A DNA stretch of 64,000 nt from Macrostomum hystrix (lineage: Eukaryota; Animalia; Platyhelminthes): positions 11,966,001 through 12,030,000 of the forward strand of contig CATNEN010000001.1 in NCBI GenBank assembly GCA_950097015.1, in the 5' to 3' direction. Shown here in pieces: positions 1,712 through 43,670 of this stretch. Numbering within the stretch: the first letter of the stretch is position 1; every line of letters begins with the position of its first letter. The notes under the pieces were generated by a model. The model saw only the letters and a program-made list of their open reading frames with translations. It was not told the DNA's origin and did not search any database. A program made the translations under genes and the position numbers.

Positions 1712-2000
1712 TCCCACCTCGACACCCAACTCCCCACCTAGCCACCCAACTCCCCACCTAGCCACCCAACTCCCCACCTAGCCACCCAACTCCCCACCTA
1801 GCCACCCAACTCCCCACCTCGCCACCCAACTCCCCACCTAGCCACCCAATTCCCCACCTAGCCACCCAACTCCCCACCTAGCCACCCAACTCCCCACCTA
1901 GCCAACTCCCCACCTAGCCAACTCCCCACCTAGCCCGACAAACCGCCCAACCTAGCCACCCAACTCCCCACCTAGCCACCCAATTCCCAACCTAGCCACC
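1712..2000. repeat. 20-bp minisatellite GCCACCCAACTCCCCACCTA
   Basis: Direct tandem copies, degenerating towards the right end. Confidence 0.95.
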
Positions 2001-2217
2001 CCTCATCTCATTCTCCAGTCTAAAGCAAAAATGAACAAAAAAACAATGCTCCATGTTTTGTGCACAATAAAACAACATTGCGTGCGTAAATACGAGCAGT
2101 TCTTATTGGATTTATTTATATCAAAAGCAAAAACAGAAAAATGACACGTGGTGCACAATACTATGTTGACACGACCTGTATACCGCCTCCTCTCATCCCG
2201 TTCAGAATCCGCTTTCT

Positions 2218-2354: not shown

Positions 2355-3004
2355 TTGAATTATCACCGTATTATTATTACAGGTCAACCAAGATGAGGAA
2401 ATCAAAATTAATCGATTTTAGGTTTGCATGACCTGAAGAAATTGGATACAAAAAAAGTGTATAGAAAGGATTATAATATTATTAAAATAATTACAATAAA
2501 AAAATAAATATCATTAAAACAATTTTATCATTAAAAAAATAATGCTGACACAGACACTGAGTGCGCATGCAACGTTGTGTGGGGCCGGCTGTTTCTTATA
2601 AATGTTCTAAATGTAAATAAATGAATATGTTAGAAAATAGAGTCCCATGTTTCGCGTTCGATAAATAAATATTCTATTGAATTTCGTGAGTGGTGCATTG
2701 GTGCACTTTCGCTGTACCTTGGAGGTTTTACTAAATGTCGTGCTTCGAGATGTATTAATAACTGCGTGCCATTAATCGTTATAATTGTTTCTTTCAAAGC
2801 AGAATATGTAAAATCTCCTAATTACCTCTTACCCAAAAAATTCTTGCCCTTGTCTATTCAATAAAATTTGTGTATGTTCTATTTTGAAAATAACTGCAAA
2901 TAACTGAAAAAGGAGTAAATAGAAAAATGACACGTGGTGCACAATATTATGTTGATTGCGTTGAGGTGAAAGTGCATTGAGGTGAGATGAATAAGGAATT
3001 GCGG

Positions 3005-3383
3005 CACAGGGAGAGAACTCGGCACGCTTTGAAGAGCAGGTCGCATCTGCAAGAATTGGGACAGGGAGAGAATTCAGCACGCTTTGAAGAGCAGGTCGCA
3101 TCTGCAAGAATTGGGACAGGGAGAGAATTCAGCACGCTTTGAAGAGCAGGTCGCATCTGCAAGAATTGGGACAGGGAGAGAATTCGGCACGCTATGAAGA
3201 GCAGGTCGCATCTGCAAGAATTGGGACAGGGAGAGAATTCAGCACGCTTTGAAGAGCAGGTCGCATCTGCAAGAATTGGGACAGGGAGAGAATTCGGCAC
3301 GCTATGAAGAGCAGGTCGCATCTGCAAGAATTGGGACAGGGAGAGAATTCGGCACGCTTTGAAAGGCAGGTCGCATCTGCAAG
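3005..3383. repeat. 55-bp tandem repeat, ~7 copies
   Basis: GCAAGAATTGGGACAGGGAGAGAATTC(A/G)GCACGCT(T/A)TGAAGAGCAGGTCGCATCT recurs with period 55 (e.g. 3049, 3104). Confidence 0.95.
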
Positions 3384-3565: not shown

Positions 3566-3700
3566 TTTTTGCGTTGCCTAAAAAGGACGCACTTGTCAGG
3601 GAAAAGCCGGATCGGATTAAGAACCGACATTGTTTTTGCGTTCCCTAAAAAGGACGCACTTGTCAGGGAAAAGCCGGATCGGATTAAGAACCGACATTGT
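3566..3700. repeat. 67-bp tandem duplication overlapping the stop codon of the NTPase-nuclease gene
   Basis: TTTTTGCGTT(G/C)CCTAAAAAGGACGCACTTGTCAGGGAAAAGCCGGATCGGATTAAGAACCGACATTG occurs at 3566 and 3633. Confidence 0.9.
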
Positions 3701-6578
3701 AGGAAGGTAACCGATGTCTCCAGGCTTGAATTGGCGCACCAGAAAATTCAATCCGATGGCCTGCTGCTGCTCCAGCCTCCTCGCTGACTCAGACCCCTCG
3801 GGCCGAGGACTAGGGAAAAGCGAGCAGACAGTGCCTGTGGGAGAACCGAACGCCTGCAAAACGAAGAACTTCTGAAATCCTCGTTGCTGAAGGTCCAGCT
3901 CGAGTTGGACTAGCAGATCCATACATAAATGCACCTTAGTCCTGAGGTTTGCTTTGATCTTACAATCGGTGTCGGCCAGTCTCGACTTGGCTAAAATGAG
4001 AATGCAGAATGACGACAAATTGAGATTCAGAGAAAAGTTCAAATTACTACATAGATCAGAACAAATATCGGACAACTAGATAAGATGCACTCACCCTCGC
4101 AAAGGAACAGATACAGGGTGTCCGTCGTTAGTACAGCAACAAATCCGTCGAATCCCGGACAGGTTCTCGTTCCCTTGCACAAAAGGACATTCACATTTGA
4201 ACCTGAGGTGGGATTTTCCTTCAGAAACGCATTTAGTTTGGCCTGGACGTCTTTGCAAGTGCCATTTGTATCCTGTTCCAGTTTAGTCACTTTGTAGACT
4301 TTGTCTCTAATGCAGAGCGCCTTGCACAAATATCTCGTGGCATTGTCATTCTGACGGCACTCGTCGCAGGACGCTTTCTTGCAGCTGGGGAATGAATTCC
4401 ACTGCATAAAGGTCGGCAATGAAAAGTACCTTAGGATTTGATTCCGCATAGATTTGTGCTGCGTTTCATTGTAGTTTGAAGAAAATACATGAAGCACTTG
4501 CTTGTTGAAAACCGCACCGGAGGGAAACGCAAGAGAGAGCAGAAAGAAGACGAGATGCATATGAGCAAACGCAACACGCTCAAACACATCAGAAAAATCT
4601 TCATTGTTATTGAAAATAGTGCACACTGTGCTCACTAAATGAGACATGCTGTACTGTTCATTTGCTGGTAATAAACGTGAGAGCTGATGCATCGTCGCCA
4701 GAGCCATAGAGGCTGAGAACTGAGAAGTTTCATCGTAGTCTAAAGAATTTATATCTTTGAAACCAAGGCCAGATGGCAGCAAATGCACGAAGAGTGATGC
4801 TTTAATGAAACATCGGACAAGTGGTCGGGTCGTGTCCACTGCAACTCCAGAAATGCCAGCCAATAGTATTTTTGCAATCGTAGTTTGCATCTCCGTTTCG
4901 GTCCCCAGGATTGAGGTCTGAATTTGCGATGATAAACCAATGATTACGGGCGCAGTAACAAAATCGTGGCACTTTTTTCTTACAGCGCTTAGTATTTGCT
5001 GAGCCAGCTGATTCTCGTGCGAATGTGAATCATTCGGCGCGTCAAAGAGAATTTCTGTTATTGATTTTTGCAGTTTGGTCAAAAAATCTTGACGGAAGAT
5101 ACGAATCGAGTTCGAGTGGGTCAGATATTGAGCGGTGGCCAAGATTGTAGATAGCAGCTCATCCCAAAGTGTCTTTTCCGTGAAATTGTTTTTGGCATTT
5201 ACACGTTCAAGCATTTCGACCACCTCAGAATACAGAAAGCAGCAAAAGTACTGCGACGACATCTTGCGTATCTGAGAGTCAGTCGGAGCACTATTTGCAC
5301 CACTGCACTTTCCACGGCAGTCTAGTTTAGTGTACAGCAAAGTCTTGAAGATTAGCTTTCTAGTTGAAGAATGGCTTATTATAAATCGAGTATCAACTAG
5401 CGTTGACCCTTTAGAGCTACTCTGCTCTACCCAGATAGGAAAGTAGCCTACTCCGCTGGCACAGCACACTACAACGGGCTTGTTTTTGTGGCCTTGCAAC
5501 GCTTTTGCAACAACATCCATGATATCTATAAATGCCCTTGACAAAGTCGTCAGCGCAGATTCGTCATCAGGATCAATGTCTGAACCGGAAAGCGGAAATC
5601 GTTCCCGTGCTCCGTTACTCCGTACGCCATGCTCAAAGAGGAAAACTTCTTGACTTTGGGCACAAGACTTGATAAATTCAGTATCAAACTGGTTTTTAAG
5701 CTTTTGGAAGCCCCTTGCAGTAGCCTCATCGTACAAGAAGATGACGTCTTTCGACGAGTCAATTCGATCAGTTAACTCAGGGATGCAAAACTCCTTAGTT
5801 GTCCTGAAACTCTCTATGAACTTTTCAGCGCACTTGTCGATCTCCATGTCCGAATTATGGACGGCATACTTTGCAAATGACTCAAAAAATCTAGCTTTCT
5901 CTTCTTTAGCCACCTGCATCGCCTTAGAAATTGAGATGTATGCTTTATTCACACGTTCCGGGTTCGTCAGGTTGGGAATGCAAAAGATGTTGTAGGTGTC
6001 AGTCTGTTCGGCAAGGTAGTTGGTCCAAGTGGTCTTGCCGAAGCCAAACCCAGCATTGTAGCACAGAAGAGAAACTTTACGACGGTCATCAAAGATTCTT
6101 ATCTGCTGCAGCTCCTTCTTGAATTCATCGAGCGTTTGAACTTGATCAAACTGAAATGAAAAAAGCGAAAAAGAAAGCTAGATAGTGTAACTAGATAGAC
6201 AATGGAAGGAAGCATATAATATAATTTAAATCAGTTTTTACATGCTGAGTAAAAAAATAACATCATATTCGTACAGTATACTATGTAAAAATGCATCTAG
6301 AAAAAACTTACCATCCTCAATGGCTTGAAAGGAGACAGATTCAATTTCTTAGCGTTCTGCTTAAATATATTCTCCTCTTCGGTCAACGTGGCCAGCAGGT
6401 CAGAACGGAAAGCACTATCAGACGTCAGTTCGTTAACGTGCTCGGTCCACTCACTCGCCGAAGACTCACCTCCATACAAGAGGAATGACTTGAATTCGTC
6501 GGCAACCTCGAGCAGCAAAGTACGTCGAAGATTTGCTGCAGCCATTTCGGCCCAAGATCGTTTGTTCGTTTGACTCAT
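3617..6578 (-). CDS. 3-exon, 898-aa P-loop NTPase + C-terminal PD-(D/E)xK nuclease-like protein (Crinkler/CR-effector-like); exons 6578-6312, 6150-4095, 3990-3617
   Basis: Donors GTAAGT (6311) and GTGAGT (4094) and acceptors TTCATTTCAG (before 6150) and CTCATTTTAG (before 3990) join three ORF-track pieces in frame (2697 nt). Walker A AGFGFGKTT lies in the part of exon 2 missed by the ORF track. Walker B is DVIFLYDEA. The C-terminal CPGFDG...LYLFLCEAK motif is completed only by splicing. Confidence 0.8.
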
Positions 6579-7284
6579 TCCGCATGAGTCAATCAAAGTT
6601 TCAATCACGACAGCCCTGGAATGATTTTGTGAACAGAAATGATTATCCCACAAAAAATAAAAAACTAGCCAACATCTAGCCAACTCCCCAACTAGCCACC
6701 CAAGCCACCTAGTCACCTCGCTCCCGCTATTGTTCCCACTAGCTTTGTTTCTGCCAAGTCAATTGGAAGCGACAACTTTTAAAAGCAAACTATAAGTTAA
6801 CAGCAGTTCTTAGCAGTTTGCAATTGATACTTAAGTGCAACACTCGGCAGGTAATATTCCAATACCTGGTTTTGATGCAATTTCTGAGAATGATGCAGTG
6901 TGTGAGGCTGGACTAAACTGAGACTTGAGACTCTGCTAGCTCTTTACACACCAGAGTTTTTAATTCCCAAATAAATCCTTTCTTTTTACTTTTGCCTATT
7001 TTTATACGTAATATGTACCGCATTGCCTAGAAATGTTTTTAATTCGCATTTCATGTTTTAATTTACTACTTTTATTTTCTATTTTTGCTAACAAATATTC
7101 TAATTGCTTTTAATTGCGCTAACAAATATCTTGCATGCATGCCTTTTAGATTTCCCTTTTTTATTAGATCCCTTCTTTGTGCGGGATTCCCTTTGTATAT
7201 TTCTCCCATTTTATCTTCCAATGCGTGCCCAAATATTTCCAAATATTGAATTATTGTTTTATTGTTTTATTGTTTTATTTTCAA

Positions 7285-7458
7285 TCTATATATATAAAAG
7301 TGAAAACTCTGTCTGTCTGTGTGTGTGTGTGCAACCTTTTGTCTTTATATTCGTATATAATCAAGATCGAATAGCCTGTATATTTTTAATAAATTTTGAT
7401 TAAATATAATAAAGAATAATAAAGCGGCAGAGTTCCTCGGAACTGACCCGCGCCCCAG
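7285..7458 (+). mobile_element. Short non-autonomous Helitron-like element
   Basis: Starts TCTATATATATAAAA after an A, followed by a (GTCT)n(GT)n tract. Subterminal GC-rich hairpin GCGG..AGTTCC-TC-GGAACT..CCGC. Ends CCAG (variant of CTRR) before a T; no TSD. Confidence 0.6.
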
Positions 7459-8019
7459 TACTTTGGGGAATTCGTTTTAACATCAAACTGAGACTTGAAA
7501 AGCTTGGGTTGCTTTCAGGAAAAGTCATCTGCTTCTGAAGTGACGGTCATAATTCCTGCCCCTCTCAAACTTTAAAAATTTTAAAAAATTTTCAAGTCTA
7601 AGAAATTACTCTCAGGTTAATGTAATCTCCTATATGGATACTATGGATATAAGAATTAGATAACAATAAAAGACAAGAATGATTTTAAATATGATAGGGG
7701 CCTAAATGGGCCATGTTAGGAGCATAAAATCATTATACTACAATCAACCCTCTTCAAATATATCATTTCAATGAATCCCCCTTTGAATATTACAGCTGAT
7801 GTAATAATCAGTTCCTGTTGAATACATTCAGGTCTAACAATCAATCCCCTTTTGAATAGTTGAAATTGCAATAATTTAAACCATCTACTGCACACCATTC
7901 AAAAGATGATAATTTCTGCAAAAAAATAGTAAAACTAAATGGAGTTATCACCAGCCTCTTGATTTTGTGTAGCATTTCATGCATAGCTAATATTATCAAT
8001 TGCTTTTAATTGCTTTTAA

Positions 8020-15016: not shown

Positions 15017-16563
15017 GTGCCGGCAGGGCGGCAGGCACCGAAGCAGAGCCGGCCGGGCCCCACGGACATGGGCTGGGCCGACCGGCCGGGGGTAGTGAGC
15101 CCAAATCAGCGCCGCAGACGCCTCAAGGCAAAGCTACGGGCCGCGGGCGCCTTCGACGCTTCAAACTCTCGGCCTAGGCCGAAGGAGGCCCAGCCGACCG
15201 AGGCGGCCGAGGCGGGAGGCCTCCGGCCCACCTGTCCGACCCCTGAGGAAGGAAGGGCGCCCGAAGCCAGTGAAGGGTACCCCATGCCGGTCTCCCTCGC
15301 TGCTGTGGACCCTCAGCCCGATGCCAGTGTAGCCCAGCCAGCCAGGGCGGCGGGCGCGGAAGGCCCTAGGCCTCCACGCCACGCTGCCCTGGAGGGTGGG
15401 GCCTCTGTCACCGCGACTGGTGGAAATTTCAACCTCGCCGGTAGCAACCGGCTCACCTTCGCCGCCGTCGTAAAGAGGCAACCGGCGATCGTCATTCTAG
15501 GCAGAGACGCGCGTCTGACTGCTGACCAGCTGAAGCAAGCAAGCCGCGTCATCGACGGGCTCCTGTGGAAGCAAACCCTGAAGGGCACGCCCCTGGCTAT
15601 AAAAACCCACGCCACGCGGGACTCGTGCCTGCTCATCTGGCCCAGCGATGCCGAATCAGGCCGGCGACTTCTTGAGATGCTGCCTGAGCAGAGCTGGGAA
15701 GCCAATATGGCCTTCCACCGAGAGGACGAGCCACCCCAGACGAAGAGGCACCGCATCTTCGTCCCGGCGGCCAGCGTCGTCACCTCATCGGAAGAGTTGC
15801 GGAATTGACTGCTTGCAGTCAACCGCGACATGCCTGCCGCGGGCCTAGTGGTGCACGACACCATTCAGCATCCCGAGGGTCGGGGCTTCACCGCCATTCT
15901 TGGCCTGTCGGACGTCTGGATGCGCAAGTACCCGGACGACACGCAGATCGCCATCGGCCTCCTAAAGCTACGCATCAGAGCTTTTGAGGCAGACAAGCGC
16001 AGAAAGCAGGGCGTGAACCCTACAGAGGCGGCAGCCGAAGGAGCTTCGGCCCCTAAGGCAGCAAGGCTCTCGAATAGGGGGCATAAAGCCCAGCATAGCC
16101 GCGCCGGAAAGGCAGATCGCGCTGCGGAGGGGGCTCTGATCGCCACCCAGCGCGCTCCACAACGCGGAAAGGCCTCCTGCAGAGGGCCGCGGAGGCAGTC
16201 CAGTCAGCAAAGCTGACCCACCTCAGGAGGGAGGTCTCCGGCCAATCGAGGCTAGCTGCCCAGCCTAGGGAGACTGGCGGCGCCACCGATGGGCCCAGCT
16301 CCATAGAGCAGGGACCTCGGGGACCACGCCAAGTTGCCCAGGGCGGGGCTCTCACCGAGACAGTGGGCACCACTCAGATGGTGGGCTCCGCTGTGGGAGG
16401 AAATAGGGCGCCTCAGGATGCCCAATGCCCGCCCGCAGGTCAGGAGCCCAACGCTGAGGAGGAGCCCATGGAAACCGGCTGCCCCCGGTTTCTCCCCATC
16501 ACTGAAGAGGAGGAAGAGGGCCTTCTGGCCCAATCCCCTCAGAAACCGGAGGACCATCAATGA
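15017..16563 (+). pseudogene. LOA-type LINE ORF1 remnant (in-frame stop at 15806-15808, probable frameshift near 16140-16210)
   Basis: Long GC-rich ORFs directly upstream of ORF2. The last stop overlaps the ORF2 start (ATGA at 16560-16563). Confidence 0.6.
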
Positions 16564-18437
16564 TTGAAAATCTTTGCTGCCTCCAAATAAACACTCAGCA
16601 CTGCGTGGCGGCATCGGTTAACCTGATGCGCTTGGCTGAGCGCACGCTCCCGAGCCTCATTTTTGTTCAGGAGCCCTGGCTTTCCAAAGGTAAGTCTACC
16701 AATCTACCTTCGGGATTTGACTGTTTTTGCATGGCGGATACCCCTCGCCCCAGATCGCTGATCTTTGCTGCAAATTCTCTAAAAGCGTGGATGAGACCCG
16801 ACCTATCCACCGGGGACATCTGCGTGATCCAAACCCTGCACATTGTGCAGCGAAAATCTACTCTGGTGGCATCGGTATACCTGCCAGGAGATGCCCCCAC
16901 GGTCAGCGATGCGTTGGTAGCTCTCTGCGACTACGTGCATGCGCAAAACTTCGAGCTCCTCATTGCCGGTGATGTGAACGCACACCACACGCACTGGGGT
17001 AGTAAGAACATCAACGACCGCGGCGAAGAGCTCCTCGCTTTCGTCGGCGGCACAAACCTTAATTTCTGCAATGCCGGAAGCACCCCTACTTTCGACAATG
17101 GCCGTTGGTCGGAGGTCCTCGACGTCACCCTCGCCTCCCCGGGCGTCCTCGCCAGGATATCCGGGTGGAGAGTGTGGGGAGAAGAGGAATCCCTCTCAGA
17201 CCATCGTTTTATCCGCTTCGAGGTTGCTAGTGCTACCCCGAAGAAAACCATCACCTGGAGCAGGAACGTCCGAAACACCGACTGGACCAGGTTCGGCCTT
17301 GAGCTGAGCAGGGGCCTGCGCGACATCGGCACTCCGGGTGACATCACAAACTGCGACATTGCTGACGAGATAGCCTCCAAGCTTGGAGGCACGGCCATCG
17401 ATGCCTATGAGGCGGCCTGTCCCCTCAAAGCCTATAAAGGCAAGAAATCTGCCCCCTGGTGGAACCCCGAGCTCGGAATCCTGAGAAAACGAGCCAAGGC
17501 TCTGCAGAGGAGATTTCTAAAAACCAGGACCCCTGAAGACAGAGAAGCCTATGTTCATGCCAGTCATGAGTTCAAGGGCCAGGTCAGAAGGGCAAAAGTG
17601 GCCAAATGGCGCCAATACTGCGAAGGGCTTGAGGGCTCCCGCCCCACTGCCCGAGTGGTAAAAGCGCTCACTTAAGACCGCTTCTCCAAACTATCCGTGG
17701 TAAAGAGACCTGATGGGTCCACCACAGATACACCAGAAGAGACGCTCCAGTTAATGCTCGGGCATTTATTCCCCAGCAACCAGACAGCGCAGGGCCAGCC
17801 AGACCACACTGTGGGCGGGCAAGGCCTAGCAAAGTCTCTCGTCACCAAAGACCGCATCATACATGCGGCAAAGTCCTTTAATCCGTACAAAGCTCCGGGT
17901 CCGGACGGCATTTACCCGGTGTTCCTACACGAGGCAGTGAAAAACTCCTGCTTCCTGGACATTCTGTGTCAGCTTCTGCGGGCCTGCGTGGAGCTGGGCT
18001 ACGTACCAGCAACTTGGAGGGAGGCCCGCGTGGTCTTCCTTCCCAAGCCCGCAAAAGACGACTATCAATCAGTCAAGGCCTATCGTCCAATCAGCCTGAC
18101 TTCCTCCTTCCTGAAGCTGCTTGAGAGACTGGTTCTCTGGCGCCTCCTCTCTGTGGAGCTCAAGCGCTTCCCTCTCTCTCAGAACCAGCACGCTTTTAGG
18201 GCTGGCAGGTCCACTGAGAGCGCCCTCCACTCCATCGTGGAAAAGCTGGAACGAGCTGTGCTGGGTAACAGCTTCGCCCTCTCCGTTTTCCTCGACATCG
18301 AGGGGGCCTTCGACAACGTCCGTTTCGAAGCGTTTCGTAGAGCCCTTGAATCTAGGGCCACGCACCCCCACCTTGTCCGCTGGATAATGTACATGATCCA
18401 GCACCGCTCTGTGGTGGCCAACCTCAATGGGCACTCG

Positions 18438-18868
18438 TGTTGTGACGCAGCCCTCACCTCTGCCCTATCATTTTCATATCTTTCTCATTCCCTGCCCCGC
18501 CAGTCGGCTAGCGTGCCCCACCCCAGTCATATGTATCGATCGCCCAGCCTACCCCTAATTGTTAAATGTACATTTCACCCGTGGGCCGGCGCTTGCGTAA
18601 GCCCCGGGCGAAGACTTGTTAATTAAATATATATTGACTCTGCGAAGAGACCCGAGTCTCAACCGTTCCGCCTGTTCACCCTGCATTGCTCATTAATTAA
18701 AACAGCCTTCAATTCAATCCAAGTTCAAGCCTCGCTGGGCCAGTCGTCGGCCGTAAGTACCCTGCGCTCTCTTTTCTGCCATTCCCTGGGAGACGGGACG
18801 GGTGGCACCCGACTGGGACCTGGGCTGTCGCAGCTTCCCCAAAGGCTGTAGGGCCGTGAGACACAACA
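18438..18868 (+). repeat. Gypsy 5' LTR
   Basis: Matches 24877-25307; only one substitution seen (GGGCCGTGAG vs GGACCGTGAG). Confidence 0.97.
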
Positions 18869-18888: not shown

Positions 18889-18959
18889 TTCAGTTGGTGC
18901 TACCGGTGATTCAGTTTTTTTGACGTCTGGTTGTAGAGTGAGAGAGAGTGCTGTGCGTC

Positions 18960-19907
18960 ATGGCCGGATTAGACGATCTCATTGGTGCGTTGACAGCGAG
19001 AATCCAGGAACAGCTTCATGTGGGTCAGAGAATCCCTCGTCCGAATAAATATGTTCCCAGTCAAGATTTTGCGCTCTGGCTGCAGCAATTTAATGCGTAC
19101 TGCGAGGCCACCCAGATCCCCGAGGATCAGAGGAAACAGACTCTGTTGAGTCTCCTTGACTTCGGCACGGCCTTCAAGGCAGTGGCCAACATGGAGTTGG
19201 ACGAGGAGTTAGGTTATGACCAGTTCGTTGAACAGCTGGAGGCTCGGTTTAGTCAAAATCGAACGGCTCAGGACTATAAGACGGAATTTCAGAGCAGGAA
19301 TCAGAGAGACGGGGAGGCTCTTGAGGACTACGCTGACGCTCTGAAGGAGCTAATGCGCAAGGCGTACCCGGCGCTGCCGGTGGAGCAGAGGGACGAGCTA
19401 GCGAAAGACCGCTTCCTCAAGGGGATTCGGGTGCCGGACAGGGTGCTTGAGAACGTGCTGCTGCAGGACCCTGACACGCTACAGGCCGCCATCCAGCGAG
19501 TCCGCCAGACTCTGGCTTCGATGAAGCTGCTGGAAGGAAAGCGGTCAGTTCACGTGGTGAACAACCAGGCTGCCGCGGCGGCTGAAAGTCAGGCAGCCCG
19601 CATGGCAGCGGAGATCGCTAGCTTGAAGGCGGAAATCGCGCAGCTGAAGCAAGGAGGTGCGTCTGCGCAGGCTGGGAGGCCGAGCCCACAGCCACAGTCA
19701 GCAGCAGCGCCTCAGTCGGCCAAGAGCTGTGGAAGGTGCCTTCAGGCTGGACATTCGACAGCGGAGTGCAGGAATCGGGTGGCATGCTACGCCTGTGGCC
19801 AGCCGGGTCACACCCGCGCCAGATGCCCGAATCAACAGGCTGCTCGGCAGCAGGGAAACGGGATGGGGGCCCGGCTAGGCCAGCGTCCCGGGCCCCGATT
19901 TCAGTAA
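18960..19907 (+). CDS. gag: Gypsy Gag with two CCHC zinc knuckles
   Basis: ATG at 18960. MHR-like QRDGEALEDY; knuckles CGRCLQAGHSTAEC and CYACGQPGHTRARC. Confidence 0.92.
   Translation: MAGLDDLIGALTARIQEQLHVGQRIPRPNKYVPSQDFALWLQQFNAYCEATQIPEDQRKQTLLSLLDFGTAFKAVANMELDEELGYDQFVEQLEARFSQNRTAQDYKTEFQSRNQRDGEALEDYADALKELMRKAYPALPVEQRDELAKDRFLKGIRVPDRVLENVLLQDPDTLQAAIQRVRQTLASMKLLEGKRSVHVVNNQAAAAAESQAARMAAEIASLKAEIAQLKQGGASAQAGRPSPQPQSAAAPQSAKSCGRCLQAGHSTAECRNRVACYACGQPGHTRARCPNQQAARQQGNGMGARLGQRPGPRFQ
19853..19897 (+). promoter_or_regulatory. Probable -1 ribosomal frameshift signal (G GGA AAC + downstream GC stem)
   Basis: The heptamer is correctly phased in the gag frame and the protease ORF is in the -1 frame. 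A GGGGCCCGG...CCGGGCCCC stem starts about 6 nt downstream. Confidence 0.75.
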
Positions 19908-22900
19908 CTGGAAAAGCGCCAGGGCCCTCGACCCAGACCCACAGTGTGCTTGGGAGAGCTGGGCTGGGCTACATCGACGCGAAGTTCGAGTCGGGGCCTC
20001 TGGTAGCTTGCTTGCTGGACAGTGGGTCCAACGTATCTTTGCTTAGCAATCGTTTCTTAGAAGCTGAAAATATTAAAGGTCAATTGCAAAACAGTACATT
20101 AGATTTTTCTATTTTTACTGCTAATGGTGAGCCGATCGAAATTCAGGGAAACATTCAATTTCATTTTTCAATTGGGGAGACAAATTTCACACACGAGTTC
20201 CTGGTTGTCGACGGAATTTCACAGCCTTGCATTCTTGGAACAGATTTTTTTCTAAAGCATTGCATGATTATTGATTTTGCCAAACACTGCCTGCAGACAG
20301 AAACCAGCGTGTATCCTTTTCGCCTGTGCGCTGAGAGGCCGCTTCTTTGTCGTATTGTACTGTGCCAGAATATCCGGATGAGTATGGGAGAGGAGATGCT
20401 GATTCCGGTTCGCCTGCAGAGAAAAGGAGCGAAAGGTTTCCAGTTTCCAGGAATGGTAGAGCCCTGTCGGCAAGGTGAGCGTGAGCACCTCCTGGCCCGG
20501 TCCGTGCAGATGCCGAGTCAGGACGGGCATCTGTCAGTCAGGATCATGAACATGTCCGAGTCCAGCCTATCAATGAGAAAGGGGGCGCGCATCGGTTGGT
20601 TCTCGCCGATCTCAGCGCAGCAGCCGGCAGGAGCTGCAGCTGAACACTGTGCAGTCTGAGGAGGATTCGTGGAACCCCCTTAGCGAAGTGAAGGAGTGGG
20701 GGTCGTGTGGCCTAACTGAGGGTGAGTCGAGGGAGTTCGTGGAGCTTGTCGCCAGAAACCGCGATGTGTTTGCCAAAGACAGCTCTGAACTTGGCCTGAC
20801 GGGCCTCTTGTCCCACGAGATTGACACGGGCAGCGCAAAGCCGGTAAGTGAGCCGCTGCGTCGGCTACCGCCCCACTGGCGAGAGGAAGTCAACAAACAG
20901 GTGGATCAGCTTCTGGCCGAAGGCCGCATATTCCCGTGCCAGTCACCCTGGTCGAGCCCGGTGGTGCCGGTCAAGAAACCGGATGGCAGCCTCCGAATGT
21001 GCTTGGATTACAGGCGGCTGAACAGCGTGACTGTGCCGGATCCGCTACCTCCGCCCAGGATGGACGAGACGCTGGATGCCTTGGGGGGAAACTGCATCTT
21101 CTCCACCATGGATCTGGCTTCCGGGTACCATCAGTGCCCGTTGGATCCAAAAGACCAGTTGAAGACGGCCTTCGTAGTGCCGAATCGGGGACAGTTCGCC
21201 TGGAATTGCATGAGCTTCGGGCTCAGGAACGCCCCGTCGACATTCACGAGACTCATGTCTATGGCGCTATCCGAGGTGAACTGGAAGGAGTGCCTCGTGT
21301 ATTTCGACGATATTGTCGTCTTTTCTATAACAGTCCGGCAGCACTTTGAGCGCCTCTTGCACGTTTTTCAGTGTCTCCGGGCAGCTAACATTAGGCTAAA
21401 GCCCGCGAAATGTGTCTTCCTTGCCGACCGGATCAAGTTCCTAGGTCACGTGATCTCAAAGGATGGAATTGCCGCGAACCCCGAGAAGTGTGCGGAGATT
21501 CAAAACTGGCCAAGGCCTTGCAGTGCTGCGAAGGTCCAATCGTTCTTGGGATTGTGCGTGTATTACAAAGCCTTTATCCCAAATTTCTCCGAAATGGCCG
21601 CTCCGCTGTACAGGCTCACCGCGAGCGGAGCAGAGTTTAAATGGGGCCAAGATCAGGAAGAATCGTTCAACAACTTGAAGGCTGCCCTGTGTTCGCCTAG
21701 AGTGATGGCATTCCCAGATTTCTCGCCCGACGCTGGCGACTTCATTCTTGACACGGATGCCAGCTCGAGGATCGGGATCGGCGCCGTGCTGTCACAGCGT
21801 CAGGCGGATGGATCTGAGAAGGTCATCGCCTATGGGTCACGGATGATCCAGCCCAGTGAAAAGAACTACTGCACCACTCGCCTAGAGTTACTAGCAATCG
21901 TGCATTTTGTAAAAAAATACCGTTACTACCTGCTTGGGAGAAAGTTCATAATCAGGTCTGACCACAAAGCGCTGCAGTGGCTCACGAATCTTCGTGATAC
22001 AGAGGGCCAGTGTGCTCGCTGGCTGCAGATGCTGCAAAATTACGAGTTCACCATAGAACACCGAGCCGGGAAACTCCACGGCAACGCGGACTCTTTGTCT
22101 CGCAAATACAGGAAGCATTCCGGGCACGAAACCTGTCCGAGCTGTACGCTGGCGGACTCTCGTGGCGTTAATACCGTCCTTTGCAGTGGACTGGGCAGGG
22201 AGGAAATTCAAACAGCCCAGGAAACTGAGTCCAAACTGGAAGTAATCCGCAGTTTTGTGCACAATGGTAACTCTGAGCTGATTGCGCCGCCTGTGATGTC
22301 ATGGGAGGAAAGATGTCTATGGTCTCAACGCCAGCTGATCAGGCTGGAGGCGCAGGTCTTGGTCGTCAAGGGACCTGACTCGGAGAAGCCAAAAATTGTC
22401 TTGCCGCCGAGTCTGTTCCAGAGGGTCTTCAGTGAGTTACATGACGGGGTTGCTGGAGGTCATCTTGGAGTGAAGAAGACTCAGGCGAAAGTTAAGAGTA
22501 GATTCTGGTGGCCAGGGCTCTCGAGAAAGATCGAGGAGTATTGCCGGAGCTGCGTGCACTGCGCCAGAGCCAAGCCCGGCAAAGCTGGCAGAGCGCCGCT
22601 GCAGCCGATAGTATCGGAGGCCCCATTCCAGCGAATCATGAGTGACATTGTAGGCCCGTTGCCTCGATCGAAGAATGGCTCCAGGTTTGTGCTGACCATT
22701 CAGGACTCATTCACGAAGTGGCCGGTCGCTGTGGCGCTCTCGAATCAGCGTGCGAGCACCGTGGCGAAGGCGATTTTTGACAACTGGATCGCCCAGTTCG
22801 GCTGCCCAGAATTCCTGATAACCGACAAAGGCACCAACTTCGAATCACTTCTCGTGAAGCAGCTGTGTCAGCTGATGGCAGTGAAAAAGTGCCGAACTAC

Positions 22901-23766
22901 GTCTTATCACCCCATGGCCGATGGCCAGGCGGAAAGCTTTAACAAAACGCTAAAAAACATGATTAAATGCCGGCAGAGCGAGGCTGAGGCGGATTGGGAG
23001 GACTTGATTGGCCCCTCGCTTCTGGCCTATCGCAGCAGCGTCCATCGTGGTACGGGGTACACCCCGTACTACATGCTGTACGCGAAAGAGATGCGCCTTC
23101 CAGTCGACATCGGGAACTTGCCTGAAACGATGCCAGCGAATGCGCCGGAGTACCTGCTGTCTCTAGGTGACAGGCTCGCAGACGCGCACTCGCACGTAAG
23201 GCAAAATCTGCAACAATATCAGCGCAAGCAGAAAGTCAACTACGACTCCAGGGTTCGAGGTCCGACCATAGATGTTGGGGATATTGTGCTTGAATACTCG
23301 CCGGCCCTGCAGCCCAGCGAAGTTGCCAAGTTCCACAAATATTGGAAAGGCCCGGCTGAGGTCACTAGAGAAAATCTCAGATGTCAATTTCAAAATTCGC
23401 CACCAGAACAGTCGAAAAACTAGAATAGTCCATTACAACAATCTTAGAAAAATTCCACAGCGGCCCCCTGAGCTGCAAGCTCCAAAACAGAGACGGCAAA
23501 GGCGGATGGCGCGCCAAGTACAGGGTGAAGTAGCTAGAGGGACACCTCAGCAGGATGAGTCCGAGTCAGATGACGCCGAGTCTGACTTCGTCTATGTGCC
23601 GCCGCCGCCGGGGCACGAAGCACCAGTGCCGCAGAACGAACCCATTCAAGTTGCAGCGCCGCCACTGCAGGAGATTCCTGCTCCGCCATCACCGCGCAGA
23701 CTCCGGCCTGGAAGGGGTAATCCACCGGCGCGCTACGGCAACCCTAGTGCTGTACTAGCACTGTAA
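19853..23766 (+). CDS. pol: Gypsy Pol (protease, RT, RNase H, integrase) with apparent frameshifts near 20650 and 23365
   Basis: LLDSGS protease; YFDD RT; TDAS...ELLAIV...RSDH...NADSLSR RNase H; HHCC (H-GH...CVHC) and D,D,E integrase (SDIVGP, TDKG, QAESFN). The C-terminus continues in ORF 23272-23766. Confidence 0.9.
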
Positions 23767-27052: not shown

Positions 27053-28328
27053 ACAGCTGGACCGACTCTGAAATCCACTGTTATACCGACGGCTCCCTGA
27101 TGAGCGGAATCTCAGGATTCGGAGCCTGTATCTACAAGGGAGGAGAGGTCGTCTGGACTCACTCCCAGCACACCGGGAAAAACTCCAGCGTTTTTCAGAA
27201 CGAGATGCTCGCCATCAGTTCATGTGCAGCAGAGTTGCGCCAGAGGGGGCTCACTGACCGGAAAATCTTTTTCCACTCCGACAGTCAAGCCGCCCTCCGG
27301 GCCCTCGACCGCAGCACCACCTGCTCTAAGACCACCTTGGACTGCAACGCCCAGCTCAACGGGCTGGCGCGGACCAACGAGGTCAAGCTCAAATGGATCC
27401 CAGGTCACGCTGGCTTTCCAGGGAATGAGATGGCGGACCAGCTCGCAAAAGCTGGAGCAGCCAGAACCCTGGCTGGGCCAGAACCTGGCGCTCCTATCCC
27501 CGTCACTGTGACCAACATCAAGCTGAAACGCTGGATAGAGGCACAGCACCTGGACAGATGGACCAAGACCCAGAAATGCAAGCAGTCCAGGGCAGCGGTA
27601 CCATGTCCGTCTCACCGCCTGCGCAAAGCCCTCTTAAGGCTGAACCGCAGAGATCTCCGCGCAGTCAGCATGGCCCTCTCAGGGCATGGCTGTTTCTCTC
27701 GGCACCGCTTTCTCCAGGGCCAGCTCCAGGAGGACAAATGCACATTTTGTAGCTCGGGCAGTGAAAACGCCGAACACTTTATATGCCACTGCCCATTTTT
27801 CACCAGGGCAAGGCTTGAACACCTTGGGCCTAACCCAACTCTCTTCGATGTTTGCAGGCCCGAGAGCATCCCTCAGCTTGCCCGGTACCTCCGGGATCCG
27901 GGGCGAGCCAACGTCTTTCCCACTGACAGTGCGGAGGACCATGCTGCAGGCGAGTCCGACGGGCCACCCTGAGCAACACCACCTCTCCTGAGGTCGTCTG
28001 GTTTGCCAGGGGTTAGCGGAATGGGCGGTCCTCTCCGCCTCCTCGCTGCGTCCGCCGGTACGGAGCACCCTGCAGCTAAGTCAAGTAAATCAAGAGCCCA
28101 AATCAGCCAAGACAACCAAGGCAGCCAAAGCAGTCAACAAGCAACCGCCCAGCGCAAGAGCAACCTGGCTCTGCGCGAAATGCGAAGCACCTATTTTTGT
28201 AGACCAGGAATTCTTTAGATAGCGCAAAGGCCACGAACTACGTACAAGGAGATTCGATATATTTATACTGACAAAATATGGCTGGGGGTGACAATGGCAC
28301 GTGGAGAGCAAGGAGTAAGAACATAGCA

Positions 28329-31062: not shown

Positions 31063-34000
31063 AGACAAGGAATCCACGCCACGTCAGCCGAAGCCTCGGG
31101 CCTCCGTATCCACGACCCCCGGCTACCGCGCCCCCTGGATGTGATCAACATCTACCTCCCGCCGGTCCGCGCCGCAGACGGCCGCACTTCGAGCCCGACT
31201 GGATCCCCGTTTCACGGGACTCGTTGGTGCTGGGCGACTTTAACGCCCACCACGGGATGTGGGACGCCTCGGGGGACGACGGCGAGCTGGGCAGGGCCCT
31301 CGAAGACTGGCCTACGACCTGGTCGCTCTGAACGACGGCTCCCCAACTAGGATCAGCCCCCCGCGGCCTGCCGAGCTCCCCTGACGTCTCCTTCGCCCAC
31401 GCCTCCTGGCAAGACCGGATCGAGTGGCGAACCGGGGAGCACATCGGCTCAGACCACCTGCCGATCATCATCGACCTCGCAGCCTACGGCCCGGCCCGCT
31501 CCAGCACCAAGCGCCTGATGCGGTACGCCTACCACAAGGCGGACTGGGACCTGTTCCAGCGGTCCCTCGACCAGGCCCTGGCCAGCTGGCCGAAGCGCCC
31601 CCCACGCACGGTGCCCGCCGCCGCCAGCAGGTTCGCGTCCGCCGTCACCAGCGCCGCCAAGGCGGCCATCCCGAGAGGCTGCCGGCGCGCCCCGATCGCC
31701 TGGTGGTGCCCGGAAGCCGAGGCGGCCTGCACCGCCCGCCGCGCAGCGCTCGAAGGGCTTCGCGCGAGCCCGGACGACCCGGCGCTCTCGGCCGCGTACC
31801 AGGCTGCTGCCGCCGCGGCTGCTCACGCCATCTGCCGCGCCAAGGAGTCGTTGTGGCGCGATTTCATCACCGATCCGGGTCACGACCTGTGTTTCGCCGA
31901 CCTCTGGCAGATCATCCGGGCTCTCGACGGCCGGTCCCAGGGGACACCCTAGTCGGCTGCCATCCAGGGCTCCACGGGGGCATCGGCCGTCTCCGACCAA
32001 CAGAAGGCCGCGCTTTTCTGCCGGGAGTACGCCGCCGTCAGCAGGCTCCCCAAGAACAAGGCGGAAGACCGGCCGGTTATCCAAGAAGCCCGTCACACGC
32101 TCCGCGCCCCCTGCAGCTGTCAAGGCCTCTGCAGCGGCCCCTGCCCCGACTTCCAGCCCGACGCCCTCCGCCGCGCCTTGGTGCGCCTGCCGGACCGCTC
32201 GGCCCCGGGACCGGACGGGGTCGCGAACATCATGCTGAAGCATCTGTCCGACCTGGGGCTCCGCTGCCTCCTGGACCTCCTGAACCTCTCGTGGAGGACG
32301 GGGGAGGTGCCCGCCCCGTGGCGACTTGCGGAGATCCGCCCGATCCCCAAGTCGGACAAGCCAGCCGGCCTGACATCCAGCTTCCGCCCTATCAGCCTCC
32401 TCAGCTGCCTGGGCAAGCTCGCCGAGAAGATGGTGAACGAGCGGCTGTCCTACATCCTCGAGACGCCCTCCACCCGTCGCAAGCCGGTTTCCGCCAGGGC
32501 CGCTCCACGGAGGAGCACATCGCCGCGGCGGCCCAGTACATCTTCGACGGATTCCAGGCCAAGAAGCCGGCAGCTCGCACCGCTCTGCTGCTTGCAGACT
32601 TATCCAGAGCCTACGACCGCGTCTGGAAAGCGGCCCTCATCGTTAAGCTCGGTCGGAAGGGGATCCCCACGTGCCTCATCCGCTGGCTCAAGGGATTTCT
32701 CTCCGACAGGAGGGCCTTCGTGCGGTGGGTTGGTGCGGCCTGCAAGCAAACCGTGTTCTCCGAGGGGCTGCCGCAGGGGTCGGTCCTCGCCCCGATCCTG
32801 TGGGTGATCTACATGGAAGACCTCTTGGACGGCGCCCCCAAGAATTGCCTCACGCTGGCGTACGCCGACGACAGCACCTTCGGCGCGCAAGGGACCACCC
32901 CTCGGGAGTGTGAGCGGGCCCTGCAACCGGCGGCCGACTGGCTCGTGCGCTGGTCCCAAACCTGGATGGTGGACCTGAGCCGCACCAAGTCGGTCGTCGC
33001 GTTCTTCTCGCTCGACCCCCGGGAGGTCAACGGAAAGGTCCAGCCGCGCATCCTCCTCGGCGACACGCCAGCCCCGTTCGAGCTGCACCCGAGGCTCCTG
33101 GGAGTGCACCTCGACTCCCAGCTGACCTTCCGCCACCACGCCAAGCTCCAGCGCCGCGCCCTCCAGCAGCGCACCGGCGTCCTCCGCTGCCTCGCGGGCC
33201 GCGACTGGGGCCAGGACGGCCAGCGCCTCGCCCAGCTCTACCACACCTACGCGGAGGCGGCCGCGCTCCACGGCGCCTCCACGTGGCTCACCTTCGCGTC
33301 CGACTCCTGCCGGGACGAAGTCGAGATTGCGCATCGATCGGCCGCTCGCGTCATCACTGGCTGCTGCCGCTCGACCGCCATTGGCGCCCTCATGCCCCTG
33401 ACCTCGTGCTGACCTTGTGCCCCTGGCGACCAGAGCGGAGGCGGAAGGCGCAGCCCTGTTCGAGGGAGCCCTCCGTCACCGTCAACCGACTCCGCTCCGC
33501 GCTGCAGCGGGCACTCTACGCCCCGCTTGCGCGCTCACGGGGAGCCTGGGGCCTTCCGCAGGAACTGGCGCGACTCGGCGCAGCATCTGAGCGCCGCCGC
33601 CGGCCTGGCCCCCCTCCCCCGGGAGCAGGAGAACCTCCCTCCGCCGCCATGGTCCGACACCAGCCGGGTCACCATCCGCTGCGACCTCCTGACCGCGACC
33701 TCCCGGGAGGACGCGCCCCACGTCAGAAAGCAGGCCGCGCTGGAGACGCTGGCGAGCCTCCCACCCGCCGACCTGGAGCTCTGGACAGACGGTTCAGCCT
33801 CCGGGGGCACCCTCAACGGCGGAGCGGGGGCGGTCATCTTCAGCAAGACCGCGCCGCCAGTCCACCTGTCGCAGGCTGCGGGCTACTCGTCCTCCTTCCG
33901 TGCCGAGGAGTCGGCGCTCTGGTTGGGGCTTCAGCACGTCGCCTCCAGGCCGGACCTCGCCTCCCTGAGCGGCCTCCGCTGCCTGACGAACTCGCAGTCC

Positions 34001-39364: not shown

Positions 39365-42300
39365 GATATCTTTCATTCATCCCAGCTCATATCTTTAATT
39401 TATCCCAGCTCATATCTTTCATTTATCCCAGCTCATATCTTTCATTTATCCCAGCTCATATCTTTCATTCATCCCAGCTCATATCTTTAATTTATCCCAG
39501 CTCATATCTTTCATTTATCCCAGCTCATATCTTTCATTTATCCCAGCTCATATCTTTCATTCATCCCAGCTCATATCTTTCATTTATCCCAGCTCACATC
39601 TTTCATTCATCCCAGCTCATATCTTTCATTCATCCCAGCTCATATCTTTCATTCATCCCAGCTCATATCTTTCATTTATCCCAGCTCATATCTTTCATTC
39701 ATCCCAGCTCATATCTTTCATTCATCCCAGCTCATATCTTTCATTTATCCCAGCTCATATCTTTCATTTATCCCAGCTCATATCTTTCATTCATCCCAGC
39801 TCATATCTTTCATTCATCCCAGCTCATATCTTTCATTCATCCCAGCTCATATCTTTCATTCATCCCAGCTGATATCTTTCATTTATCCCAGCTGATATCT
39901 TTCATTCATCCCAGCTCATATCTTTCATTTATCCCAGCTCATATCTTTCATTCATCCCAGCTCATATCTTTCATTTATCCCAGCTCATATCTTTCATTCA
40001 TCCCAGCTTATATCTTTCATTCATCCCAGCTTATATCTTTCATTTATCCCAGCTCATATCTTTCATTTATCCCAGCTCATATCTTTCATTCATCCCAGCT
40101 CATATCTTTCATTTATCCCAGCTCATATCTTTCATTCATCCCAGCTTATATCTTTCATTCATCCCAGCTCATATCTTTCATTCATCCCAGCTCATATCTT
40201 TCATTTATCCCAGCTCATATCTTTAATTCATCCCAGCTGATATCTTTCATTTATCCCAGCTCATATCTTTCATTTATCCCAGCTCATATCTTTCATTCAT
40301 CCCAGCTCATATCTTTCATTTATCCCAGCTCATATCTTTCATTCATCCCAGCTCACATCTTTCATTCATCCCAGCTCATATCTTTCATTTATCCCAGCTC
40401 ATATCTTTCATTTATCCCAGCTCATATTTTTCATTCATCCCAGCTCATATCTTTCATTCATCCCAGCTGATATCTTTCATTTATCCCAGCTCATATCTTT
40501 CATTCATCCCAGCTCATATCTTTCATTTATCCCAGCTGATATCTTTCATTCATCCCAGCTCATATCTTTCATTTATCCCAGCTCATATCTTTCATTCATC
40601 CCAGCTCATATCTTTAATTTATCCCAGCTCATATCTTTCATTTATCCCAGCTCATATCTTTCATTTATCCCAGCTCATATCTTTCATTTATCCCAGCTCA
40701 TATCTTTCATTTATCCCAGCTCATATCTTTCATTTATCCCAGCTCATATCTTTCATTTATCCCAGCTCATATCTTTGATTCATCCCAGCTCATATCTTTC
40801 ATTTATCCCAGCTCATATCTTTCATTTATCCCAGCTCATATCTTTGATTCATCCCAGCTCATATCTTTCATTTATCCCAGCTCATATCTTTCATTCATCC
40901 CAGTTCATATCTTTCATTCATCCCAGCTCATATCTTTCATTTATCCCAGCTCATATCTTTCATTCATCCCAGCTCATATCTTTAATTTATCCCAGCTCAT
41001 ATCTTTCATTCATCCCAGCTCATATCTTTCATTTATCCCAGCTCATATCTTTGATTCATCCCAGCTCATATCTTTCATTTATCCCAGCTCATATCTTTCA
41101 TTTATCCCAGCTCATATCTTTGATTCATCCCAGCTCATATCTTTCATTTATCCCAGCTCATATCTTTCATTCATCCCAGCTCATATCTTTCATTCATCCC
41201 AGCTCATATCTTTCATTTATCCCAGCTCATATCTTTCATTCATCCCAGCTCATATCTTTCATTCATCCCAGCTCATATCTTTCATTTATCCCAGCTCATA
41301 TCTTTCATTCATCCCAGCTCACATCTTTCATTCATCCCAGCTCATATCTTTCATTTATCCCAGCTCATATCTTTCATTTATCCCAGCTCATATTTTTCAT
41401 TCATCCCAGCTCATATCTTTCATTCATCCCAGCTGATATCTTTCATTTATCCCAGCTCATATCTTTCATTCATCCCAGCTCATATCTTTCATTCATCCCA
41501 GCTCATATCTTTCATTCATCCCAGCTCACATCTTTCATTCATCCCAGCTCATATCTTTCATTTATCCCAGCTCATATCTTTCATTTATCCCAGCTCATAT
41601 TTTTCATTCATCCCAGCTCATATCTTTCATTCATCCCAGCTGATATCTTTCATTTATCCCAGCTCATATCTTTCATTCATCCCAGCTCATATCTTTCATT
41701 TATCCCAGCTGATATCTTTCATTCATCCCAGCTCATATCTTTCATTTATCCCAGCTCATATCTTTCATTCATCCCAGCTCATATCTTTAATTTATCCCAG
41801 CTCATATCTTTCATTTATCCCAGCTCATATCTTTCATTTATCCCAGCTCATATCTTTCATTTATCCCAGCTCATATCTTTCATTTATCCCAGCTCATATC
41901 TTTCATTTATCCCAGCTCATATCTTTCATTTATCCCAGCTCATATCTTTGATTCATCCCAGCTCATATCTTTCATTTATCCCAGCTCATATCTTTCATTC
42001 ATCCCAGCTCATATCTTTGATTCATCCCAGCTCATATCTTTCATTTATCCCAGCTCATATCTTTCATTCATCCCAGTTCATATCTTTCATTCATCCCAGC
42101 TCATATCTTTCATTTATCCCAGCTCATATCTTTCATTCATCCCAGCTCATATCTTTAATTTATCCCAGCTCATATCTTTCATTCATCCCAGCTCATATCT
42201 TTCATTTATCCCAGCTCATATCTTTTATTCATCCCAGCTCATATCTTTCATTCATCCCAGCTCATATCTTTCATTTATCCCAGCTCATATCTTTCATTCA

Positions 42301-42631
42301 TCCCAGCTCATATCTTTCATTCATCCCAGCTCATATCTTTCATTTATCCCAGCTCATATCTTTCATTTATCCCAGCTCATATCTTTCATTCATCCCAGCT
42401 CATATCTTTCATTCATCCCAGCTCATATCTTTCATTTATCCCAGCTCATATCTTTCATTTATCCCAGCTCATATCTTTCATTCATCCCAGCTCATATCTT
42501 TCATTTATCCCAGCTCATATCTTTCATTTATCCCAGCTCATATCTTTCATTTATCCCAGCTCATATCTTTCATTTATCCCAGCTCATATCTTTCATTCAT
42601 CCCAGCTCATATCTTTCATTTATCCCAGCTC
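39365..42631. repeat. 23-bp satellite, long array (~3.3 kb)
   Basis: Same monomer as 29093-29402. Confidence 0.98.
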
Positions 42632-43670
42632 AAATCACAGTCGGCATTGCTTTGCTAGCTGCCCGATCGATGCTCAATGTCGTAGTGGAATTCACTTAGC
42701 CGCTCGATCCACCGACCAAGGATCCCTTGTGCCTCTGTCTGGCGTGGAAGCCATGGAACTGCCTTGTGCTTGGTGCAGGCTGGAATCGCTTGCCGATAAG
42801 ATAAAAGCGGAAGAGTTTCATTTTGTTGGCTGGCGCTAATAATTCTTTTCTGGCAATGTGGATATCGTTTCTCTGAATTCTTCTTAGCTCGGCTAAAGTA
42901 CGCAATCGGCCTCTCAATGCCGTCGGACCGTATCTTTGCAAGACAGGCGCCGATTAGATTGTCGCTAGCATCGACATCTCGGACCAGTCGTACTTTTTAA
43001 TCGTCTGAGAACTCTGGATATGCGAGCACTCACAGCGAGGTCAAATCACAGTTATGACCCACTAGCTAGTTTACCAGCGACTTGAACTGATTCAATTCAC
43101 AAGCAGATTCCAATGCACCAATGGACTGCAAAAGAATTCATCTTGTAAAACAGCAGGGATTTGCCAATACTGCGGGATTAGGTGCATTTGGATTACTGAA
43201 ATAATATGACTGTATTACGTGAACGTCAAAGCTGCAGACTGTGCATTGATTTGAGATCTGATTGAACATTGAGATGAAATCATAGCAGATTGACAACATT
43301 TTCCAGCTTCGTGCGAATCGACTCCTTACAGGGAAGTCTGCCAAAAGGGACTGGAGAACAGTTTACCATATTTAGGGAAGTTAGCCAACTTTGTCGGTTA
43401 ATTTTTTATCTCATTTAAAACTTAGCTTTGTTTTCCTCATTCATGAGAAATTCTCCCTCACCTCAAAAGAGAGGAAAAGCAGAGAGACAAGAAGAGGAGA
43501 AAACACAGGGTCTTTTGTCTCTCTCTCTCTGGACCTATAAAATATCCAATCTAGAAAATAAAGAAAGTGAGCTGCAGCGACAGACTAAATTATTCGAATG
43601 TAATAATGCCAATCCGGAACTGGAAGTACATAGGGATGCTAAATAAATAAAACAGCTGATGAACACATCT
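42622..43670 (+). repeat. Segmental duplication block X, copy 2 (includes a Gypsy RNase H remnant on the minus strand, ~42637-43030)
   Basis: Near-identical to 29393-30445. Confidence 0.95.

Follow-up and report, generated by a model that had tools for sequence, protein, structure and literature searches.

In a 64,000-nucleotide stretch of the genome of the flatworm Macrostomum hystrix (contig CATNEN010000001.1, positions 11,966,001 to 12,030,000, called the window in what follows), a gene of three exons lies on the minus strand between positions 3617 and 6578. Its product is predicted to join a P-loop nucleoside triphosphatase (NTPase) to a C-terminal domain carrying a D...E-x-K triad, the signature of a candidate nuclease. 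The minus strand was read directly, and the three exon pieces were translated and searched separately. The joined frame, 89+685+1+123 = 898 codons, runs through two GT..AG introns, which reproduces the original prediction of an uninterrupted 898-residue frame via canonical splice sites at 6312/6150 and 4095/3990. The elements of the gene are listed below, with motif residues numbered within exon 2; in full-length numbering, the triad is D757, E774 and K776.

6312-6578, minus strand: exon 1 (probable), 89 codons, ATG at 6578-6576, end ...AGG ATG/GTAAGT, donor GT at 6311-6310
6151-6311, minus strand: intron 1, 161 nt, GT..AG, phase 0; the acceptor could alternatively receive a spliced leader
4095-6150, minus strand: exon 2, 685 codons and 1 nt, end ...TGC GAG G/GTGAGT; NTPase domain, helical middle and most of the nuclease-like domain
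6028-6051, minus strand: Walker A, GFGFGKTT (LLCYNAGFGFGKTT), residues 34-41; G38, K39 and T40 invariant in alignment A2
5725-5745, minus strand: Walker B, VIFLYDE, residues 136-142; F138, Y140, D141 and E142 invariant in A2
5452-5475, minus strand: sensor-1-like strand, VVVCCASG, residues 226-233
4789-4878, minus strand: most conserved block, in mid-protein (IAK..LA..SGV.VD..R..VR......SLF); K427, A431, V438, R446 and S452 invariant in the five sequences of alignment A4
4357-4383, minus strand: small Cys cluster, CKKASCDEC, from the exon 2 translation and the alignments to the outside homologue P0001 and the paralogues (see below)
4096-4161, minus strand: first part of the nuclease-like motif, C-P-G-F-D...L-Y-L-F-L-C-E, residues 664-685; D668 and E685 invariant
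3991-4094, minus strand: intron 2, 104 nt, GT..AG, phase 1, inside the x codon of E-x-K
3986-3990, minus strand: last two bases of the split Ala codon and the Lys codon completing E-A-K, from the exon 3 translation
3617-3990, minus strand: exon 3, remainder of the split codon, 123 codons, stop TAA at 3619-3617

The mechanical open reading frame (ORF) called at this place, 4039-5952, starts with a GTG at 5952, downstream of the Walker A motif; as had been predicted, the ORF track misses that motif. It had also been claimed that intron 2 must be crossed to complete the nuclease-like motif. This holds, since the Lys of E-A-K comes from exon 3, and the same was found in two paralogue types, B and C, described below. 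The motifs named in advance (VIFLYDE, VVVCCASG, CKKASCDEC and CPGFDGFVAVLTTDTLYLFLCE) were all recovered in the exon 2 translation.

When exon 2 was searched by phmmer against 1.84 billion representative proteins, a sole outside homologue was returned, P0001, of 888 residues (34% identity, E 5e-71). Exon 2 is colinear with its residues 102-764 (E 3e-77) and exon 3 with its residues 781-869 (E 9e-11). P0001 is represented by three near-identical sequences on Logan contigs of 2.9-3.1 kb, a size that would suit assembled transcripts. Across the position of intron 2 it reads ...LYLFFCEAKTRLD... without a break. Junction 2 is confirmed, because P0001 is uninterrupted there, exon 3 is colinear with it, and two paralogue types share the codon and the phase of the intron. 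Exon 1 and junction 1 are probable, as judged by sequence signals: exon 1 lies within a 139-codon open frame with a strong donor, GTAAGT, in phase, and the resulting N-terminal length, 123 residues before Walker A, agrees with the 125 residues of P0001. Read from sequence, then, the gene is genuine, intact and multi-exon. Its end coincides with a 67-bp tandem duplication at 3566-3700 (2 copies, 98%), which covers the stop codon together with the 28 codons before it and runs into the 3' flank; C-terminal residues in the first copy can still be aligned to P0001.

Further searches for relatives gave little. Word-index homologue searches with exon 2 and P0001 returned nothing beyond P0001; the same kind of search with profile A2 was blank and also missed P0001, and is hence uninformative. 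A scan of metagenome contigs with alignment A8, which consists of the window gene and P0001, gave 371 pattern matches and 0 relatives. No family among the PADLOC defence-system models matched P0001 or exon 2 at E up to 5. The picture is that of a family with almost no relatives and very fast divergence.

Relatives were nevertheless present in the M. hystrix genome itself, of which 220,453,370 bases in 42 contigs were searched. The window gene (type A) has one intact copy. Fragments 98-99% identical to it, several with stop codons, occur on contig 39 (C39:83-101 kb) and contig 1 (C1:15.160-15.166 Mb); these are recent partial duplications and not intact paralogues. They are accompanied by a copy of a repeat that lies in the window at 7589-8000. 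More distant members were reached in two ways. Weak hits of P0001 led to type B, an ORF of 681 codons of which two identical copies stand in tandem (C39:28.0 and 33.3 kb). A genome-wide search with a profile of the window gene, P0001 and type B then gave type C (C2:8.124 and 8.188 Mb, E 5e-6; the second copy carries stop codons) and type D (C2:8.156 Mb and C9:1.358 Mb). In hhalign comparisons, the pair of the window gene and P0001 aligned to type B with E 3e-5 over 381 columns and to type C with E 5e-4. In all, three diverged paralogue types at about 20% identity lie in the genome, and one homologue outside it.

Protein identity of the paralogue types to the window gene is only 19-23%, and the five colinear sequences of A4 share only 13 invariant columns, including K427, A431, V438, R446, S452, an F-E pair, T631, D668 and E685. 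In spite of this distance, types B, C and D share with the window gene a colinear architecture, the GKT of Walker A, Walker B, the F-P motif, the mid-protein block and the D...E motif, and types B and C also share the phase-1 intron and the E-x-K that is read after splicing. They differ from it in their N-terminal regions, in the Cys cluster and in the part following E-x-K, which are not conserved. The intron boundaries are GAG G/GTGAGT ... AG/CC AAG TCG in the window gene (intron 2), GAG A/GTAAGT ... AG/TG AAG TCG in type B and GAG T/GTAAGT ... AG/GC AAG TCA in type C. Types A, B and C have in common this phase-1 intron, placed in the x codon; in types B and C, the ORF read through this place seems to give ESK or ECK.

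The window gene and types B, C and D form one family with at least four deeply diverged types. The presence of an intron within the motif and the shared gene structure indicate an old family with selection on D, E and K. It had been argued that the gene is under selection since it is intact while its neighbours are degraded; this argument is weak, the neighbouring retroelement ORFs being long and intact, and the conservation among paralogue sequences appears to be the better one. Signs of turnover are the identical tandem copies, the copy with stop codons and the fragments at 98-99% identity. The best explanation is a flatworm-restricted, fast-evolving family under birth-and-death turnover.

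The front end of the protein is, as its motifs support, a P-loop NTPase. It combines a Walker A of the GxxxxGK[ST] form with a Walker B strand ending in D-E and a polar sensor-1 strand, as in ASCE P-loop NTPases. Walker A reads GxGKTT in the paralogues, and GKT is present in all paralogue types. Walker B appears elsewhere in the family as IFIYDE, and in types C and D as LLHDA. The sensor-1-like strand becomes AVLCASG, VLFCTS, AIVCFSS or GILCFST in other members. All N-terminal pieces keep Walker A, Walker B, the F-P motif and the sensor-1-like strand. The Cys cluster is kept only in part in P0001 and is lacking in the other paralogue types. Among curated P-loop families in Pfam, all matches were below threshold (AAA_22 with E 0.083 for the window gene, AAA_33 with E 0.029 for P0001 and AAA_16 with E 0.0021 for type C); AAA_22, AAA_16, ATPase_2 and NPHP3_N are the families hit in this sub-threshold range. 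The NTPase part of a structural model of P0001 aligned weakly to NB-ARC/STAND and ORC-type AAA+ proteins. From these likenesses we infer an ASCE-type fold, closest to the ORC/Cdc6-STAND branch of AAA+.

At the other end of the protein, D668 and E685 are invariant in the five sequences of A4, which are 19-34% identical. After splicing, the motif reads EAKS in the window gene, EAKT in P0001, EMKS in type B and ECKS in type C. The spacing from D to E is 17 residues in three types, and a longer loop occurs in two. In the P0001 model this region folds as helix 709-725, strands 731-738, 748-754 and 757-764, helix 771-791 and strand 804-811, where the predicted local distance difference test score (pLDDT) is 42-78. 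Residues 694-763, with pLDDT 53-78, are moderately confident and the best-predicted part. The second strand opens with the D, and the third closes with E-x-K. An alpha-beta-beta-beta-alpha-beta order in which D opens one strand and E-x-K closes the following one is classical for the PD-(D/E)xK superfamily. D and E-x-K thus lie on adjacent strands in the P0001 model, and the K is present after splicing in types A, B and C, as well as in P0001. When the P0001 model was searched by Foldseek, Hjc resolvases recurred among weak, non-significant matches. A nuclease fold is plausible on this model, and we rate it as somewhat more probable than its absence. Of the predicted architecture, an NTPase joined to a restriction endonuclease (REase), the P-loop motifs and the invariant D...E-x-K were recovered, while the REase fold did not obtain a significant structural match.

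The flanks of the gene link it to its paralogues in another way. Two satellites lie near it, as follows.

2996-3383: satellite of 55 bp in 7 copies, on the 3' side of the gene at 234 bp from the stop
1713-2001, minus strand: 20-bp satellite array, with a perfect unit in the same orientation at 6687-6701, 5' of the ATG

At 96-99% identity, the 55-bp satellite occurs in only four other places of the genome: 3' of the second type C copy, at three sites in the flanks of the type B tandem, and at C5:1.720 Mb. Three of these four places adjoin family members, and the orientation relative to the gene is the same. The 20-bp repeat has no other occurrences in the window, where 0.34 matches are expected by chance, and is also found 5' of type B. 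About 700 bp of 3' flank are shared with contig 39 at 98%. Satellite repeats are shared with C39:26.5-36.9 kb, C2:8.190 Mb and C5:1.720 Mb, and the family members flanked by them have proteins of only about 20% identity. Type B itself is a tandem pair with 5.25 kb per unit, situated 28-35 kb from the end of contig 39. The window gene resembles a single unit, about 5 kb long, of this satellite-bracketed cassette, with a very different gene inside. Either ectopic conversion between family loci has made the flanks uniform, or they belong to a common carrier element. No terminal inverted repeats bracketing the gene were found, and a DNA transposon of that type was rejected on this ground.

The surroundings are rich in repeats. 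A dispersed repeat of about 350 bp lies at 6934-7286, about 350 bp upstream of the ATG, with at least 10 copies at 94-98% identity on contigs 2, 3, 7, 8, 12, 29 and 38. A GC-rich block (52-70% GC) at 12400-34600 holds retroelements with long open frames:

16560-18626: open frame with an endonuclease of the long interspersed nuclear element (LINE) type and a reverse transcriptase (RT)
18948-19907: open frame of a gag with zinc knuckle
20649-23423: open frame of a Ty3/gypsy pol with RT, RNase H and integrase
27100-27972: open frame with RNase H
31424-33412: open frame with a further RT

On the plus strand, 40775-42658 is a 627-codon open frame of BspA-type leucine-rich repeats (Pfam LRR_5, E 1e-25), which is unusual in an animal genome. 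A gag-like ORF of about 365-372 residues, with a Q/N-rich tail and a CCHC zinc knuckle, adjoins family members on C39:20001-30000 and C2:8152001-8161000.

Gene structure, family, motif conservation and the conserved intron are established at the level of the sequence. On them we would place, at about an even chance, the following reading: an intracellular protein of 898 residues, with a helical N-terminus, a P-loop NTPase followed by a helical region of about 300 residues, and a C-terminal alpha/beta domain with an invariant D...E-x-K triad, acting as an NTPase-licensed nuclease in genetic conflict. The NTPase would be a nucleotide-dependent switch or an oligomerisation module, and would license cleavage of nucleic acid by the C-terminal nuclease of PD-(D/E)xK type. 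The conflict could consist of defence against mobile or foreign DNA, or of a selfish, toxin-like function; an effector, a defence gene and a selfish element, as originally predicted, may each be meant. Several results weigh against this reading. The two AlphaFold models have a mean pLDDT of 39-40 (39.6 for exon 2 alone and 39.2 for P0001 with the seven-row alignment A7). Structural searches by Foldseek and VIA gave no significant match to any known fold, and a profile search of PDB sequences, blank at E up to 10, gave none to solved structures. The PD-(D/E)xK families of Pfam matched no member tested, and the curated libraries Pfam, PADLOC, NCBIfam and PHROGs held no significant family. The part following E-x-K, searched by phmmer against six-frame translations of the paralogue loci, showed no detectable conservation between types. 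Finally, exon 1 had no significant similarity to P0001.

The last point also touches the gene model, which could be partly wrong. In that case exon 1 would not be part of the mRNA, a trans-spliced leader ending in an in-frame ATG would be joined at the acceptor 6151/6150, and the protein would have about 810 residues. Exon 2 indeed begins in phase 0 and has no Met ahead of Walker A, and both the spliced leader of Macrostomum, which probably ends in ATG, and the trans-splicing of 10-20% of M. hystrix genes (PMC10468722) would fit such a start. We consider it unlikely, given that exon 1 is an ATG-containing open frame with a strong in-phase donor, and that with exon 1 included the distance from start to Walker A fits P0001. 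A different objection concerns the C-terminus, which might not be a nuclease at all, the conserved D, E and K being catalytic or structural in another alpha/beta fold. The blank in the PD-(D/E)xK families of Pfam and the differences between types in the second half of the domain speak for this view. The spacing of D and E-x-K on the strands of a hairpin is nevertheless classical for PD-(D/E)xK, and the structural matches, all below significance, favour no other fold. One such fold is that of RavZ, a protease with a Cys-His-Asp triad. A RavZ-like protease was rejected, because the family (A4) has neither an invariant Cys nor an invariant His; the invariants are D, E and K instead. We regard a non-nuclease C-terminus as improbable.

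A further reading keeps the NTPase and the REase-like domain and changes their purpose: the gene would belong to a selfish, mobile or cassette-like element, either as its cargo or as its machinery, with the two domains serving transposition or homing, or acting as an addiction toxin, while the satellite-bracketed unit of about 5 kb spreads or recombines. This would account for types A, B and C having proteins of about 20% identity next to a 55-bp satellite and a 3' flank that are 96-99% identical and in the same orientation, for the 20-bp repeat that lies 5' of types A and B and brackets the window unit, and for the 5.25-kb type B pair close to a contig end. The near-identical fragments scattered at C39:83-101 kb and C1:15.165 Mb and the retroelement-rich DNA around the locus point the same way. 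There is also precedent in what PMC5289972 says in its passages on Crinkler (CR) effectors: their C-termini derive from prokaryotic transposon-linked proteins, including NTPase and REase pairs, and CRN genes lie in Helitron-rich, head-to-tail arrays. Against it, no terminal inverted repeats bracket the gene, Pfam finds no transposase, integrase or Helitron Rep domain in the protein, and the conserved spliceosomal introns and deeply diverged single intact copies suggest resident genes; moreover, ectopic gene conversion between related loci could explain the shared flanks. Taken together, we see this as a possible reading, although not a probable one, and retain the NTPase-licensed nuclease of a resident gene family as the preferred one.

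New here are the joining of the sequences into one family, the conservation of the intron within the motif, the single outside homologue and the shared satellite flanks. Fusions of an NTPase and a nuclease recur in conflict systems; prokaryotes, for example, have them in defence proteins, and oomycetes, fungi and kinetoplastids in their Crinkler/RHS effectors. If the preferred reading is true, this design would be new in a free-living animal, in a family with no detectable link to a known one, with birth-and-death turnover and with shared satellite flanks. If the nuclease fold fails, an ordinary fast-evolving orphan ATPase family is left. Macrostomum is a tractable animal in this respect, with RNA interference, transgenesis and many sequenced species.

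Among known systems, the Tn7-type proteins TnsA (REase fold) and TnsC (AAA+) bring together the same two activities. They are separate proteins of a defined transposon that has a transposase, whereas for the window gene no sequence similarity to them, no transposase and no element ends were found. A second case is that of prokaryotic STAND/AAA+ defence proteins. Avs-type defence proteins are STAND NTPases with PD-(D/E)xK effector domains, and the likeness to the window protein would lie in coupling an NTPase that serves as nucleotide switch to a REase-like effector. The window protein differs from them in having its candidate nuclease at the C-terminus, no PADLOC, NCBIfam or Pfam match and no recognised repeat sensor, and in being encoded by a eukaryotic gene with conserved spliceosomal introns.

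A third comparison is with the CR effectors, to which the original prediction had likened the gene. The summary of Zhang et al. 2016 given in PMC5289972 puts the NTPase and REase combination at more than one quarter of CR C-termini, often with a helix-turn-helix domain between, and the same source states that free-living eukaryotes have such C-termini too. The window protein shares with CR modules the order of P-loop NTPase, helical linker and D...(D/E)xK domain, and its family shares with them multiple copies, fast diversification, repeat- and transposon-rich DNA and head-to-tail copies. It differs in having no recognisable header, no detected similarity to CR proteins, no evident secretion signal and a free-living animal as host. 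Neither exon 1 nor the N-terminus of P0001, which is all-helical in the model, matched any Pfam family at E up to 1-5, and so no CR header (the ubiquitin-like Crinkler domain with LxLFLAK, or another) was recognised; the phmmer search of the representative proteins, which returned only P0001, gave no sequence homology to CR proteins. In the ESM Atlas a Crinkler-family cluster appeared at 0.90 and rank 26, with low recognition value, which is a lead only. With no header domain and no sequence link found, Crinkler/RHS kinship was not supported. We do not class the gene among the Crinklers; it may work in a CR-like manner. In its widest form, which we offer tentatively and hold to be rather doubtful, the comparison would make this an animal-specific family of ATP-switched nucleases in satellite-bracketed, partly subtelomeric and tandem cassettes, serving as an innate genome-defence or selfish toxin-like system and diversified by cassette exchange: an animal counterpart of the STAND/AAA+-nuclease and CR modules.

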